Made by a program: the position numbers and the translations under genes. 64,000 bases of DNA from positions 2,480,001 through 2,544,000 of the forward strand of contig NEEC01000010.1 of the NCBI GenBank assembly GCA_002189035.1. The letters are read 5' to 3'. This document shows positions 18,167 through 26,666 of the stretch, in pieces (positions within the stretch are counted from its first letter, which is position 1; each line of letters begins with the position of its first letter). The DNA comes from Utricularia gibba (Eukaryota; Plantae; Magnoliophyta). The notes under the pieces are model-generated. The model saw only the letters and a list, made by a program, of their open reading frames with translations. It searched no databases and was not told where the DNA came from.

Positions 18167-20842
18167 TTACAAAAATATGAGCACAAAGAATACCAGCAGC
18201 AGGAGGCTGCAGTTAGCATATGTTTCATGGGGAGCGGTTCGAGATGAGCTTCGGCTCACACTCAGCTGCCCGGAATTCATGAATTCATCTCTCCCGTAGG
18301 TTATGGATACATTCACAGAAGAGGAGCCTGAAAAGGGAGAAGGAAGAACAGATTAAAGTGGAGTTGAAAAGGCAAGATTGAAGTGTAGGGGGGAATGGAG
18401 GAAGGAGCAGCCTACAATCAAAATCAGTCCATCCGATCCTCTGCCGAGCTAAGTCGTAGACGAAAATCTTATCCTTGAGAACAAGATCTGGGGGAGAATC
18501 AGCTGTTAGCATACTTTCAAGTAGTTGTTAGCATACTTTCAAGAGGGGTGTCTTGGATATGCAACCCACCTCCTAATATTGTCATTCCTTGATTCTGAAC
18601 CTTCACGAACCCTATGCACCAAACTGTGGCGCCATCCTGTTAAAGGGGAAGGAGAAGTGGTGAAAATTGCGTTTGAGTGATGATTGTTGGCGTTTAAGGT
18701 TAAAGCTGTGCCCTGATGAAGGACTCACAAGGAATCCAGAGTGCAGAAGGTAGTCTGCTGGTCTTAACAACAGTGATGCACCTCCAGTGAAAATGAAAGC
18801 TACCGCAGGGAATACATCGGATACACTAGAAATAAACCAGAAGTATTAAGTGTTTGTGAGGAGGCTAAACACACCAGTTAGATGGGCAGGAGAAAAGAAA
18901 AAAAAACCTTGTGGAGAGCACATAGCATTGATTTCCCTTAGACGTAATTGATCTGACGGATTGAGATACAACAGAAGTTATCTGCAGAACAGTAGGAGAA
19001 CGTAAGCCAACTTCACGGCAGATTAAAAATGTTCGAGGAGCCATAAGATCAAATGAGTTTTTTTTCAGATAGAGACCAGGATTCAGAAGGACCAATTACT
19101 ACAAAGAAACATTCTAGCTCTGACTATGATAATACAGGAGGAAGAAGGTAGGGATTACATACAGCAGCGACAAGTGGATCATATGCTGCTTCTACTAGGT
19201 ATGCTAAAGTTGTTCCCGAATCAACAATAGTTCCTTGGTTTCCAGAGGTCATAAACACTGCTTCATCAATGGGCAAAGACTGCCCATTGACCGCAATGCT
19301 CTGCAGATACAAATTATAATGAGGCCTGAAAAATCAGAAAGAAAAAATCAAAATGTGTATGTAAGAATGATCCCATGCACGGGTCTTAAAATTTTCCTGA
19401 TCAACACAAGAACTGAAAAACTGGGAACCCAGACTCAGGCTTGTGATCATCATTTCATTCTTTTACGATGAAATAAGCAGCAACAGGTGAAATGTTAATT
19501 TACAGTTGCACTTTGTAAAGTACGTACTGTGATGGAACAAGGGGTGTATAAACGATACTTGGATCCAATATCTCACCAAGAACAAGTATACCCCCACCAT
19601 TGCCCTCGCCTTTCAGACAGTGAGAGAATACTCTAGGTGTTAACCCAAGAGAAGACAACTGTGATATCACTGAAAGACCATGCTGGCCAAATCCAAATAT
19701 CCCATCAACTGCTCTATCTGATTTAGTCAAATCCCCGTATACAGAGGTGCTGCACCTGGCCATATATTCAATTCAACTCTTCAACACACTCAAACACAAT
19801 GTTAGAAGGTAAAGGAACAAAAGGTGCCACGAGATACAACACATCGAAAGCAGCCACCATAGATACCCAGGGGCCTGATGAAGGTAAAAGTGTGCATCAA
19901 TACAGTACAGTCAACAGACGAACAAGAAAAAAAGGGAACAGAAGATGCATACCCAAAAACAATAGACGCAGAGGAGTTGGCTTCTAACGAGTTACCCAAA
20001 ATTGAATCGAAATGGAATCTGTCGTATAAATACGATCCAGAAGCCCCACTTCCATCTCCATATTGGAATGAGAAATCACATCTGTTGCTGTCAGTGGAAC
20101 ATTCGGCAGAAGAAATTTGAATAATGGAACTGCATACGCTTTCAGAACATGAAATTGGCGCAACAGTCGAAGATGCAGCAGGATCAAACAAGTTGACTGG
20201 AATCTGTGAGTAAATAGAATTGAATGACATTGACCAAGAAATTGAAGGTACAAAAGAATTACAAACGTTAAGAGTTTTTACCCCCAGTCCGCTATTATGG
20301 GGGCAATTGCTACAGGAACTGCAAGCCACCCACAAAATATCACTCCCAGTATCAATCTGAACATTGAACTCCTGTGGCGGAGATCCCAATCTTACTTTTG
20401 TGTAATACAGCCTACAGAAACATAAAAAATGCAGATGAACATCATAGCAAATGTATCTGGATCAGTGAATATTACGCGGGTGCAAGAAACAAACAAACAG
20501 AATGAAAATGGCTACGACCATTCACCAACCAAACTAAGCTGAACATCAGATTGCACAAAAAATTCAGAAAGGCGATTCATAATTTTACCCCACGGCGTAA
20601 GGATCGGAGGAACCCCCGACAGGAAAATTCACAATTCCACCGGAGAATCCCTGCAGCATCCGTGCATGCCTCGCACGATCCCTAGCCTTAATCTCCTCCA
20701 ACTCCATCGTCTCCCCAATCGGAGAAACCCTCTCCAGACGCAAAATCTGCTGAAAACCACCACCGCCCCCGAAAGCAGCCACCACATCAGCGGCCGTAAG
20801 CAGGACGACTGCCGCCATCAGAAACAAACCCCCGGCAGCCAT
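18167..20842 (-). CDS. A1-family aspartic proteinase (aspartic proteinase 36/39-like), signal peptide and probable GPI tail; 10 exons
   Basis: Both catalytic motifs ([22 protein letters not shown]), [44 protein letters not shown], and a hydrophobic C-terminus. GT-AG junctions traced for all exons. Confidence 0.95.
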
Positions 20843-21823: not shown

Positions 21824-23013
21824 TCAGGATATAGAACCAGCGGCTTCTTCTAGTATTGTACGTGCTTCAGTTCCAGGATCAGCAAGTTCACAAGGGGTCT
21901 GGAAATGCAGAGAAATTCAGGTAACAGTTGAAAACGGACGTTGGCTGAGATGTAAGTCACATACCTTCCCATATACGTTTGTTAAAAGGGGGGATGCACC
22001 GTATGTGAGTAATAATCTGATGACATCTGCATATTCACCTCTTGCAGCATGGTGAAGAGGCTAAAAGATGAAGAACAGGAAGTGATAAGTACATAGCCGG
22101 TTATGGTTTGGTTGATTTTTCTCTGATGTGGGAACGAAGGTCAGATGGTGAATGAACAGAAGATGTCAAACTCACAGTGTCCCCTTCGGTGTCATCAGTA
22201 TCCAACATCCTCTTCACACGCTCAGGATTATTAGCATGGCTGATAAGAAGTTGGGCAATCTCTGTATAACCTGAAGAGTAGTTTCCACCAACGAAAGATA
22301 GATTGTCAACAGCATTTGTGATGAATAATTAGTCCATTCATGTACAAGATAACCAAAAAACACCTCCGGCACATGCGTCATGCAATGGAATCCCACCATC
22401 TTCATCCTTAGCCTCCAGGTTAGCCCCTCTTTCCAACAAAAACTGCAACAATTTTAAAGATTTTGGGTACTGGAATTGGCAATCTTAACTGCACGTAATC
22501 ATTGAATAAATTGCCTGACCTGAACACAATCCAAATGACCATAAAGGCAAGTCAGATGAAGAAGCGTGTCACCATCTTCCATTGGATCATCGATGTTTCC
22601 ATCATAATCGTCTGACAATTTCATAATAACATTCAAAACACAAGCACTCTGCAATCTAACAAAGCTTCTTTGTTCATACACGCGAACAAAGGAAGCCGCA
22701 ACGGAAGAGGAAAAAGGGCCAAATTACATGCATAAATCACAAATTTAAGCGCTGCAGAGGGCGCGTACATATAATAACGAGCCAAAGAAATTGAAATAGT
22801 TCAAGCGCACATACACCAGTATCAGTTACCTAAACAACGACGGAGCGCGTCCACGTCACCGGACTCGGCAGCCTCGACGATGGGCCGGAGATGGACAGGA
22901 ATTTCAGCGTGGTCAATGTCTTCATCATGTTCGGCGAACTCCAGGCCTCCATCATCGAATAGAGCATCGGCTTCCTCATCGCCGCCATCCCGTCTGCCGT
23001 TCGGCACCGCCAT
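21824..23013 (-). CDS. Ankyrin repeat protein (At3g09890-like); 6 exons (23013-22830, 22611-22520, 22442-22364, 22271-22176, 22060-21965, 21898-21824)
   Basis: GDTLLHLTCLYGHLDCVQ, GGIPLHDACAGGY and GDTPLHHAARGE ankyrin repeats with consistent splice phases. Confidence 0.92.
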
Positions 23014-23465
23014 CTTGGATAGGTGCTCGCGTCTTTCCGGTGGCGGTATGTACACTGAACCACCCACCAACGCCTCCCTGAAACCCGTACCACAGAAACA
23101 CTTTCTCCAGACCTAATCTCGCCGGGCCCAAATACAAATATGTGGGCCTATGCCCAACATGAAAAGACGAACTAAAATAGTCCAAGTTGGACCTTAGTGG
23201 GTAGTATTTTAAGAGGCCCATGAATCGCCATTTCCCCTTTATATCGACAAATTATTATTTGCTATTAATACAAATAAAATAAAGGTTATTTAATTAATGG
23301 TATACTTATATTGTTTATATTTAAATAATATGAATTATAATTAAAATTAAAAATATATATTTAATATATAAATTTGCATGGTTTACTTTTCTGTATTTAT
23401 CGGTATATTAGCAGCGCAGGGTGAGGTGAAACACACCTGAAGAAGAAGAACAAGGCTTACATAGC

Positions 23466-24551
23466 TCAAAGCATGGAAGGAAACAGATGAAGGAAGGAAA
23501 GCTCTGGCACCTCCTTGCCCTCCTGAAAGCTAGTAGCTGCTGCGTCTGTGAGCTTGAGCCACAATACTTCTCTTTGCTCTTTCAGATTGCTGAGTCTGGC
23601 CAGATTCTTGGGATGCTGATTCTGGCACTCCTCGAACAGCTCTGGATCCATGTCGGACAGCAACCTTCGCACGTTGACAGTTAGGAACAGCCTGTGCTCC
23701 TCTTTCATGGGTAATGTAAATCCATTGATTATGCTTCCCAGTATTTCCAAAAGTTCTCCAATCCCATTATGCCTTCCTGTTTCATATACGAACCTATAGA
23801 AGATATTGTTGATACTTCTCCTGATAAAGGGTCTATGAATCATGAATCTCCCATATATTCTGTGAAGAATGGTCTTCAAATACTCCCTCTCCCTCGGATC
23901 CTCGGAATCAAACAAATCAAGGAGCTTAGAGACAAATGAGTTGTCTATGTATCTCTTAGCTATCTTCGTGTCTGTGTAAGTAGAAACCACATACCGCAAG
24001 AGAAGCTCATAAACAAGCTGCAAATGTGGCCATGTGGGAACAAAGTATTGCTCCTCCTCATCAGGGTCCAAACTCTCTGACCCCGTGTTTTCGTATGAAG
24101 CAGGGGGCAAGCATCTGAATATATTCAGCGAAATCATCTGAACCATTTCGTTCTGATCCAATTCAGTGATCTTCTCAGAACCAGATTGAATGAAATCCAC
24201 AAGCTCAACCAATGTCAGCCTTTTAATCTCCTTTTCCCTCGCCATTTTCAAAAAATCCGAAAAATCACACACATTGCAACAGATTTTCACCTTCCTTCGA
24301 AACAATCCCTGCCTCTCCATAGCCAAAACATCTCGAAACCTAGGAAGATTTTCAAATGCTTCAGGCACCGATTCGGAATCGGTGTCCTCATGTTGCGACA
24401 ATTCCGGCGGCCCCCTACACCGAGATACATGATTAACCACAATATCCGAATCCAAGATTCCGCTGGAGCTCCGTCCATGCGTAACGGCGGCCAAATCGAC
24501 GTCGGATTTGGCCATCTTGCGATGGCTTCTCTTTATTATCTTGTTGAGCAT
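23466..24551 (-). CDS. PP2A regulatory B' (B56, alpha/beta-like) subunit with an in-frame internal deletion of roughly 140 aa; single open exon of 361 aa (functional variant or young pseudogene)
   Basis: [66 protein letters not shown] then jumps directly to TVNVRRLL. The LLKYWP and HFQVAERAL segments are absent. Confidence 0.9.
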
Positions 24552-24966
24552 GTCTCCCCGCACACCAATTCAGGAATCCATAATACAAAAAGTCACGAAG
24601 ATCATCCGGATAGACTAAACCGATCGTTAAAAAGATTGCTAACCTGAGAAATCCACCATGGATCGCCGGCGATCGGAGTGCTCCGGCGATCGAATGGATG
24701 CTTAAATGATGTAGAATAGAAACGGGTACAATTCAAGCCAATGATCACTCCAAATTCAAAAAATATGCGAATTTAATAGACATTATAATTTTAAGATAAA
24801 TTGTGAACAATTTTTTGTAGACATTTTATTTAAAAAAAATTATTTGATTTCCAATTTATTCGTAGATTTATATTATTTTAATTTTTAATTGTAGAAAAAT
24901 AATTTTAATCCTAAAAGGTTGATGATTAAAACGTGGCCAACAAGTATAAAGTCCCATTTGGAAACA

Positions 24967-26666
24967 TCACGGGGCCTCTTCGGGTTGAGGTTCGGGTTCG
25001 GGTTCCTTTGCATTGTTATAAATGATTGTGCTATAAAACTTCCTTGTCCTAATCACCAGCACGAGGGAGAAGATCGACCCCACCAGAGTCGCCGCCGTTA
25101 TGATCAGAAACGCCGCCTTGTAACACTCCACGCCGTCGCACGTCAAGTCTTCTCCGGGAAGCCTCGTTAACCCCTTCGCCGCCATCTGCCTCCGTGCCAC
25201 TCTATCGTAGAGACCTCCTGAGACCTTCACATTGAGAATGTAATTCCCAACGGGGCTAGCACCAGCCCCGAAGTTGTACAACGTGGAGTAGTATTTGAGG
25301 CCGAAGATCTCCGATATGATGGCGAAGATTAGTGGCCACTGAGCTCCGAAGCAGAAGCCGGTTATAATCGAAGCCAAGTAGAGGGAATTCTCGATCCCGA
25401 AAGCGATCAGGAGGTGGCCGGAGCAAGAGAGGAGGAGGATGAGAGTAAGCATCAAGGGCCGGGGAAATTTGTACTTTGTTAAGAGAATTTCCGATGCAAA
25501 ACCTGCAACAACTCTCCCCAGATAGTTCCATATGCTTACCAATGAGATGAATGTGGATATGCTCCTTGCTGGGTATCCCAAGGCATTTCCGATCTGTCCG
25601 AGATTATCGATCGCCGTCAGGGTTCCTCCGACTCCGAATGTCGTCACGGCGAAGAGGATGATCATGTCTAAGCTGAAAAGGGCTTGCAGAATTGTGTAGT
25701 CTACGCCTCTTGGAGGTGGATTGAAAATGTTTCTCCAACAAGAATCACCAGTGGTTGTTTCTGAAGAAGTCCTTTCCTGTTGTTGGTCTTGAAGCTCAAC
25801 TGGAAAATGGTTCTGTTTTGTGCTTTCAGTTTGAAATGGGGTTGCTTCTGTTCTCATTTCCTCTCTGAACACGATCACCAGTGGTGAAAAGAGAAGAACC
25901 AGCACAACCACTGCACTGATTATGTACTCCGTTTGAGAGAAAACAGCTCTGTTTTGCACAATGATGATGATCATCAGAAACCCAGCAAGCCCAAGTGAGA
26001 TGTAGAGCAGCTCGTAGAAGATTCTGAGGTCGTTTCGACCGCGACCGCTTCTCATTATCCGAACAGTCCCCACGAAGGCCAATGAAACAACTGCAGGCAG
26101 CCAAGCAATCAGTAGAATCAAGAAATCAGTGTTGTTCCCATAGAGAGCATGGTATAGCTGAGTCAAAATGGCTCCACTCAGCCCCACAAATCCCTTCAGA
26201 AGGCCCAAAACGACGCCGCGGCTCGCCGGAAAATTCTTCACACAGGTGACCAATGCGCCGGTGTTAGCGAAGGACTGCGAGTTCGCCCCCACGCAAATCG
26301 ACGTACACATCTGCCATAACTGGGGACGCGATATACGCTTAGTCACGGCGAGCCAAATCACGAAGTAGCCAGAGAAATTCATGACGGCTCCGATCGAGAG
26401 CACCACCCACGGCGGAGTGATTTCATTGATTAACCCCGAGATTATGCCTATATTCCCCCCAAGTCTTTGAAGAAGCTCAGTAAGTTGATTGTCGTCTGAT
26501 CATAACCCAGAGACGACTTGATCTGGCCCGAATAGAGACCAAACATGTAGGTCGCACCCGCCATCGCCATTATAAGAAGCGAAGCAAAGATCATAAACCA
26601 TCGGGCGGCGATTGCACGCCCGATAACCGCCGTAAAACCGCGACTGAAGCCCAGCGCCACCTCCAT
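24967..26666 (-). CDS. Nodulin-like/NFD4-like major facilitator superfamily transporter; intronless, with one apparent frameshift at 26455-26460
   Basis: RWFMIFASLLIMAMAGATYMFGLYS..LGYDQTTINLLSFFKDLG[G]NIGIISGLINE, GANSQSFANTGALVTCVKNFP.SRG, TLTAIDNLGQIG, GAQWPLIFAIISEIFGLKYYSTLYN. Confidence 0.93.

Follow-up and report, generated by a model that had tools for sequence, protein, structure and literature searches.

A B56/B'-type regulatory subunit gene of protein phosphatase 2A (PP2A) in Utricularia gibba has lost 142 residues from the middle of its pseudo-HEAT solenoid through what appears to be a single, exactly in-frame genomic deletion. The gene lies in a 64,000-nucleotide stretch of contig NEEC01000010.1, which we refer to as the window. 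The explanation that we favour, at somewhat better than even chances, is that a recent deletion in a deletion-prone genome left a young and as yet undecayed loss-of-function copy or allele of B'β. The remaining protein keeps the groove that reads LxxIxE motifs, and the main alternative is that the shortened protein has been retained for a function of its own.

A B'β gene with an internal deletion

The B56/B' open reading frame occupies positions 23466–24551 on the minus strand and runs, intronless and uninterrupted, for 361 codons followed by a stop. The Pfam B56 profile (PF01603) matches the 361-residue protein with an E value of 2e-94 (317 bits) in two stretches, the main one aligning residues 69–291 with profile positions 1–224 of 413 and the second, a short one, lying at the end. 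Alignment with human B56γ gives the same picture: residues 70–291 correspond to B56γ residues 28–248 and residues 290–340 to B56γ 389–439, with about 140 residues, equivalent to B56γ 249–388, skipped in between. These matches amount to strong homology interrupted by a single clean gap, and a chance origin is out of the question.

We compared the gene with orthologous B'β loci from a Logan contig (L001), Erythranthe, Sesamum, Paulownia and Arabidopsis. By tblastn and alignment, codons 1–290 (23682–24551, minus strand) are homologous to the first 290–297 exon-1 codons of the B'β orthologues and encode the disordered N terminus, pseudo-HEAT repeats 1–4 and the first helix of repeat 5. Codons 291–361 and the stop (23466–23681, minus strand) are homologous to the last ~50 exon-2 codons, which encode the C-terminal helix, and then continue into an 18-residue extension. 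When aligned with Lamiales B'β proteins, KEEHRLFL runs straight into TVNVRR, and the absent block comprises VRALIPLHKPK ... HFQ / VAERAL ... HWNQAVHGL. The deletion thus takes in the last 94 exon-1 codons, the family's only intron and the first 48 exon-2 codons; every orthologous B'β locus compared has a single phase-0 intron after HFQ, and the span corresponding to the deletion measures 547–2835 bp in these loci. In structural terms, the loss begins with the second helix of pseudo-HEAT repeat 5 and extends over the greater part of repeat 8 (5B–8A), and the truncated B'β lacks the full core of eight pseudo-HEAT repeats. A preliminary description, made from the sequence alone, had proposed an unbroken frame of 361 residues with a KEEHRLFL–TVNVRRLL joint near 23681, and some 140 residues missing together with the usual intron position. 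The alignments bear this out, placing the joint between 23682 and 23681 and the phase-0 intron within the missing 142 residues. The tail beyond the usual stop (..AAAQGG-stop) consists of 18 lineage-specific residues, encoded at 23466–23522 on the minus strand.

Gene order and a conserved 5' element

Two synteny anchors flank the B' gene on the same strand. Upstream lies an NFD4/Nodulin-like MFS gene (24967–26618, minus strand), and downstream an ankyrin-repeat gene (21962–22618, minus strand) whose four matching exons are collinear with those of the Arabidopsis neighbour. The NFD4-like gene is also found upstream of B'β in Paulownia (Pfo_004213 and Pfo_004212, respectively) and in L001. In Arabidopsis the ankyrin gene lies next to B'β on the same strand, an adjacency (At3g09880/At3g09890) that the preliminary description had given correctly. 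A third marker is a conserved 5' element of ~40 nt (24654–24697, minus strand), identified by tblastx and alignment of the orthologous loci. It stands ~105–150 nt before the B' start codon, has the sequence TTCGATCGCCGG..CCGATC.CCGGCGATCCATG and terminates in an upstream ATG. All B'β orthologous loci examined have this element in common, the window copy being identical to the consensus at 34 of 39 positions.

By these comparisons the gene order NFD4-like, B'β, ankyrin is old, and the locus is the syntenic B'β orthologue, B'β also being the subunit to which the sequence is closest in similarity. No second B56-like sequence was found within the window. Since the NFD4-like gene, the ankyrin gene and the 5' element still stand where they do in relatives, the deletion occurred at the ancestral locus.

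Two smaller observations concern these markers. The start of the upstream reading frame in the 5' element is conserved and its peptide is not. Locus tags place an NFD4-like gene and B'β near each other in Citrus, Escallonia and Solanum.

The LxxIxE groove is retained

In B56γ pseudo-HEAT repeats 3 and 4 enclose the LxxIxE groove, which is remote from the surfaces that face A and C and is formed by S173, T184, H187, R188, Y190, R197 and R201 together with E226, I227, S230, I231, A236 (through its main chain), K240 and H243 (PMC4930772). We mapped these residues onto the window protein by the alignment offset to B56γ. They fall within codons 216–286 (23694–23906, minus strand), as S216, T227, H230, R231, Y233, R240 and R244, and E269, I270, S273, I274, T279, K283 and H286. 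Thirteen of the 14 are identical to human B56γ; the exception is A236, a main-chain contact position, which is replaced by threonine (T279). The LxxIxE pocket is therefore retained, as the preliminary description had supposed.

That description had also characterized the lost part as the repeats that contact the holoenzyme. This label is only partly right, because residues involved in binding the AC core are scattered and some of them are retained. B56 engages scaffold repeats 2–8 through its convex face, and its concave side leans toward the catalytic subunit (PMC6406801). Mutations that abolish binding to the AC core are spread along the protein (C39R, E164K, Q256R and L257R; PMC4986044); Q256 and L257 fall inside the deleted block and the other AC-binding residues in the retained half. 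A similar division is seen for the contact points in PMC4687035, which we renumbered to B56γ and whose positions are approximate: those near residues 256 (to A and C) and 339 (to C) are deleted and that at ~192 (to A) is retained. Because repeats 5B–8A hold residues needed for binding the A–C core, no normal holoenzyme would be expected from the truncated subunit. Normal holoenzyme formation has likely been lost, with part of the A-facing surface staying in place. The suggestion that the protein might dock BZR1-type clients through the groove fares less well, since a review leaves BZR1 out of its list of LxxIxE proteins and reports that it has no such motif and binds B' through its PEST domain (PMC10418862).

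We built an AlphaFold2 model of the 361-residue protein with a 71-sequence alignment. The mean pLDDT is 70, with confident helices for repeats 1–5A (pLDDT 70–94). Helices are confined to residues 62–301 and a long C-terminal helix (residues 303–343, pLDDT ~80), and pLDDT dips to 55–66 around the joint (residues 281–300). In a Foldseek comparison the N-terminal half superposes on B56 chains over ~240 columns (E 1e-11). As both breakpoints fall within helices, a continuous chimeric helix running across the joint, as predicted by the model, is plausible.

Purifying selection on the retained codons

Codons 1–290 are 75–76% identical to each of five orthologues, which are 86–92% identical to one another; over the core (codons 67–290) identity to the B'β orthologues is 81%. 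Selection was estimated with a branch model by maximum likelihood (GY94, F3x4, 6 taxa; own script). For the exon-1 part, ω is 0.112 on the window branch and 0.113 in the background, with likelihood ratio statistics (LRT) of 0.0 for equal ω and 135 against ω=1. For both parts, that is, the two codon alignments concatenated column-wise, the corresponding values are 0.136 and 0.157, with statistics of 0.5 and 138; the outcome is unchanged when the exon-1 part is taken by itself. On the window branch ω has an upper 95% bound of ~0.19, with dS ~1.1 and dN 0.12–0.15. Pairwise NG86 ratios range from 0.06 to 0.13 at dS≥1.2, a level near saturation that can only inflate ω.

ω was also estimated by segment. 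In the N terminus ω is 0.24 on the window branch against 0.34 in the background, in repeats 1–2 0.117 against 0.104 and in repeats 3–5A 0.042 against 0.025. In the tail (residues 291–343) it is 0.16 against 0.62 (LRT 5.1, 53 codons), a weak hint that constraint on the tail may be stronger than in relatives. Each of the segments rejects neutrality, the post-junction tail among them, so that the neutral evolution raised in the preliminary description as an argument against a functional protein is not what the retained codons display. The low identity to orthologues was considered as a possible effect of relaxed selection, and the branch model together with calibration on the neighbouring gene rules this out: the excess on the window branch is ~2.3-fold for the NFD4-like neighbour and ~3.2-fold for the B56 core. 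The ~75% identity is accounted for by a fast lineage (dS ~1.1) and not by relaxed constraint.

How long the frame could have stayed open without selection can also be estimated. By full enumeration, 3.9% of all single substitutions in the reading frame introduce a stop codon. If 0.05–0.2 indels are allowed per substitution, the probability of an intact frame falls to 0.05 or below after 0.015–0.036 neutral substitutions per site, or ~1.5–3% of the branch. On this estimate any neutral phase must have been shorter than ~0.015–0.04 substitutions per site, and a pseudogene younger than that may be compatible with both the intact frame and the low ω. The reading frame contains none of the marks of a decaying pseudogene that we looked for (a stop, a frameshift or ω relaxed toward 1). 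The branch estimates show that the retained codons have experienced normal purifying selection along almost all of the branch, and at the least up to a very recent point.

A recent deletion is the favoured explanation

We read the deletion as recent because the retained codons are under purifying selection like that of the orthologues, with no detectable neutral phase. In this scenario the B'β gene of a fast-evolving, compact and deletion-prone Lamiales genome would have been hit by one genomic deletion. Its product would retain pseudo-HEAT repeats 1–5A together with the C-terminal helix and, deprived of repeats 5B–8A, would most likely form no normal holoenzyme. The gene would then stand at an early stage of loss by fractionation, in which stops and frameshifts are yet to be acquired. 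Large deletions are common in deletion-biased, repeatedly duplicated genomes, and the loss of 3.5 of the eight repeats of a solenoid is usually disabling. U. gibba is documented to have gone through three whole-genome duplications and massive fractionation, and to have many microdeletions (PMC4972453). Redundancy is plausible as well, since B'α/β-type paralogues are present in other Lamiales. It is the frequency of deletions, the extent of the loss, the unshifted constraint in the retained half and the paralogues that could cover for the gene that lead us to favour a young loss.

Several observations sit less comfortably with a young loss. The deletion is the sole disabling lesion, the start codon and the 5' element being intact; neutrality is rejected in each segment, with the tail at 0.16 against 0.62; and an in-frame outcome had a prior chance of merely 1/3. 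Moreover, recency is itself deduced from the lack of decay, and an older deletion followed by continued selection would fit equally. Either the event took place very recently or selection has continued to act on the shortened gene, two possibilities that are inseparable because there is no deletion-bearing relative by which to date the event.

Retention of a functional truncated B' is less likely, but a serious alternative. The protein would be a free-standing LxxIxE module, with repeats 1–5A capped by the C-terminal helix, that docks short-motif clients and delivers no phosphatase to them. It would serve as a decoy or competitor of PP2A–B' holoenzymes, or else take on a new adapter function. 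In its favour, 13 of the 14 groove residues are identical, in a groove that lies between repeats 3 and 4 at a distance from the surfaces facing A and C (PMC4930772), and ω on the window branch is 0.04 in repeats 3–5A and 0.16 in the tail with neutrality rejected everywhere. It is also consistent with the intact reading frame, start codon and 5' element, with the superposition of the N-terminal half on B56 structures and with breakpoints inside helices, across which AlphaFold2 draws a continuous helix ahead of a confident C-terminal one. The selection signal is not datable to the time after the deletion, however, and a recent deletion explains it equally well. Nor is there a shift in the constraint pattern of the retained half, as the loss of holoenzyme contacts might bring. 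Model confidence is low at the joint (pLDDT 55–66), and sequencing runs that we guess to be RNA hold 0.09–0.24 of the sampled words from 23300–24800. The literature searched offers no precedent for folding and motif binding by half of a B56 solenoid, and the deletion was seen in no relative found. We hold slightly less likely the fuller version, in which the truncated B'β would be an expressed and selected LxxIxE reader that competes with holoenzymes and protects client phosphorylation, a single deletion of the kind that shrinks the genome having brought it into being. The data are matched by a young pseudogene no less well than by the decoy or dominant-negative form put forward in the preliminary description.

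Relatives that share the deletion, which that description had suggested looking for, did not come to light. A word-index search with the whole protein and with residues 262–361 returned no protein with the same deletion among 5.8 billion, in a collection apparently without Lentibulariaceae proteins, which makes the absence weak evidence; the NFD4-like neighbour likewise has no close match there. The sole contiguous-looking match, a Populus protein, proved to be merely N-terminally truncated. An exact-protein look-up has no record of the 361-residue protein, and all sampled Lamiales B'β genes are full length.

The junction points to a single genomic event

The deletion junction (23679–23684, minus strand) was placed by comparison with the flanks in orthologues. 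The window reads TTC CTA / ACT GTC across the joint, with Leu290 (CTA) followed by Thr291 (ACT). In relatives the 5' flank ends in ...TTT CTY and the 3' flank in ...GGC CTA, a leucine codon in both cases, and the breakpoints fall at CTY/GYC and at CTA/ACT or TTG/AGT. The two breakpoints share 2–3 nt of microhomology (CTN). Neither a GT..AG pair nor an AG acceptor is present at either breakpoint in the orthologue sequences checked, and the breakpoints are not splice sites. One genomic deletion probably joined the ends at this microhomology, by end-joining or illegitimate recombination, with the frame kept by chance. A 32-mer spanning the junction has no match in JGI metagenome contigs.

It is very improbable that the full-length gene is real and that ~1 kb was dropped in assembly. 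A neighbouring gene carries a 1-nt homopolymer shift that may be an assembly error, which would suit such an origin, but the breakpoints of the deletion share merely 2–3 nt and present no repeat to collapse, and for this reason we consider an artefact unlikely. The loss is in addition exactly in frame and scarless. Of the sampled 31-mers from 23300–24800, a share of 0.70–0.71 is present in DNA runs of two independent studies, dated 2013 and 2019. This is approximately the fraction of that stretch taken up by the reading frame and does not cover the junction itself.

The neighbour's shift lies in a G6A2 run (26452–26461, minus strand) of the NFD4-like gene and is apparent by comparison with the single 650-residue reading frame of Paulownia; its source is an error of homopolymer assembly or else a genuine frameshift. 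In L001 (positions 420–1790) the Nodulin-like gene matches the window copy in pieces and in several frames; the gene may be broken in that contig, or the contig itself may contain many errors.

A retrocopy processed from a mis-spliced B' mRNA and integrated elsewhere in the genome would account for an intronless frame whose missing part spans the intron, yet it has next to no chance of being correct: both ancestral neighbours and the 5' element mark the original locus, in keeping with the in-situ deletion advocated in the preliminary description, the breakpoints in orthologues have no AG acceptor, and synteny and breakpoint sequences together rule out a retrocopy or mis-splicing origin.

Relation to known B56 proteins and to gene loss

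By its sequence the gene belongs to the B56 family, but its architecture is unusual. With plant B'β genes of the At3g09880 type (Paulownia Pfo_004212, Sesamum and Erythranthe) it has in common the neighbouring genes, the 5' element and an LxxIxE groove that is fully conserved; it differs in the absence of 142 residues (5B–8A) and of the intron, in its 18-residue C-terminal extension and in a branch that is 2–3-fold longer. We know of no demonstration that a B56 half-solenoid of this kind is stable. The human B56γ1 core (residues 30–380) crystallized with LxxIxE peptides (PDB 5JJA and 5K6S, among others) shares the fold over repeats 1–5A and the groove. Whereas that core has seven and a half repeats, the window protein is predicted to have four and a half and a terminal helix.

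Ito and colleagues reportedly described, in 2000, a naturally arisen truncated B56γ isoform in mouse melanoma cells that was proposed to disturb PP2A targeting. That isoform is said to lack the N terminus and not an internal block, and to stem from a somatic insertion in a tumour line, whereas in the window gene an internal block is missing. Should the truncated protein prove to be produced and retained, it would be, as far as we know, the first natural B56 reduced to its motif-binding half, and a ready tool and test case for splitting substrate docking from phosphatase recruitment. It would also mean that deletion-driven genome shrinkage can create regulators.

Gene loss after polyploidy is said to proceed by short deletions (fractionation), as Woodhouse and colleagues reportedly showed in 2010. 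The window gene resembles fractionation, and the microdeletions of U. gibba (PMC4972453), in its loss of ~1 kb, in the tiny homology at the flanks and in the deletion-biased, duplicated genome in which it lies. It differs in being in frame, undecayed and without relaxed selection, so that it may not be dead. If it is a young dead copy, it would be a commonplace case, though a clean one, of a gene caught in the course of its loss, through one deletion between short stretches of microhomology in a compact genome. It would also caution against taking an uninterrupted frame and a low dN/dS across the branch as proof of function.

Two further features lie 3' of the B' gene. An AT-rich stretch (23321–23376) lies shortly beyond the reading frame, where the transcript's 3' end and polyadenylation region would be expected, and downstream of the ankyrin gene a minus-strand reading frame (19802–20389) encodes TAXi_N and aspartyl-protease domains, resembling a xylanase inhibitor.
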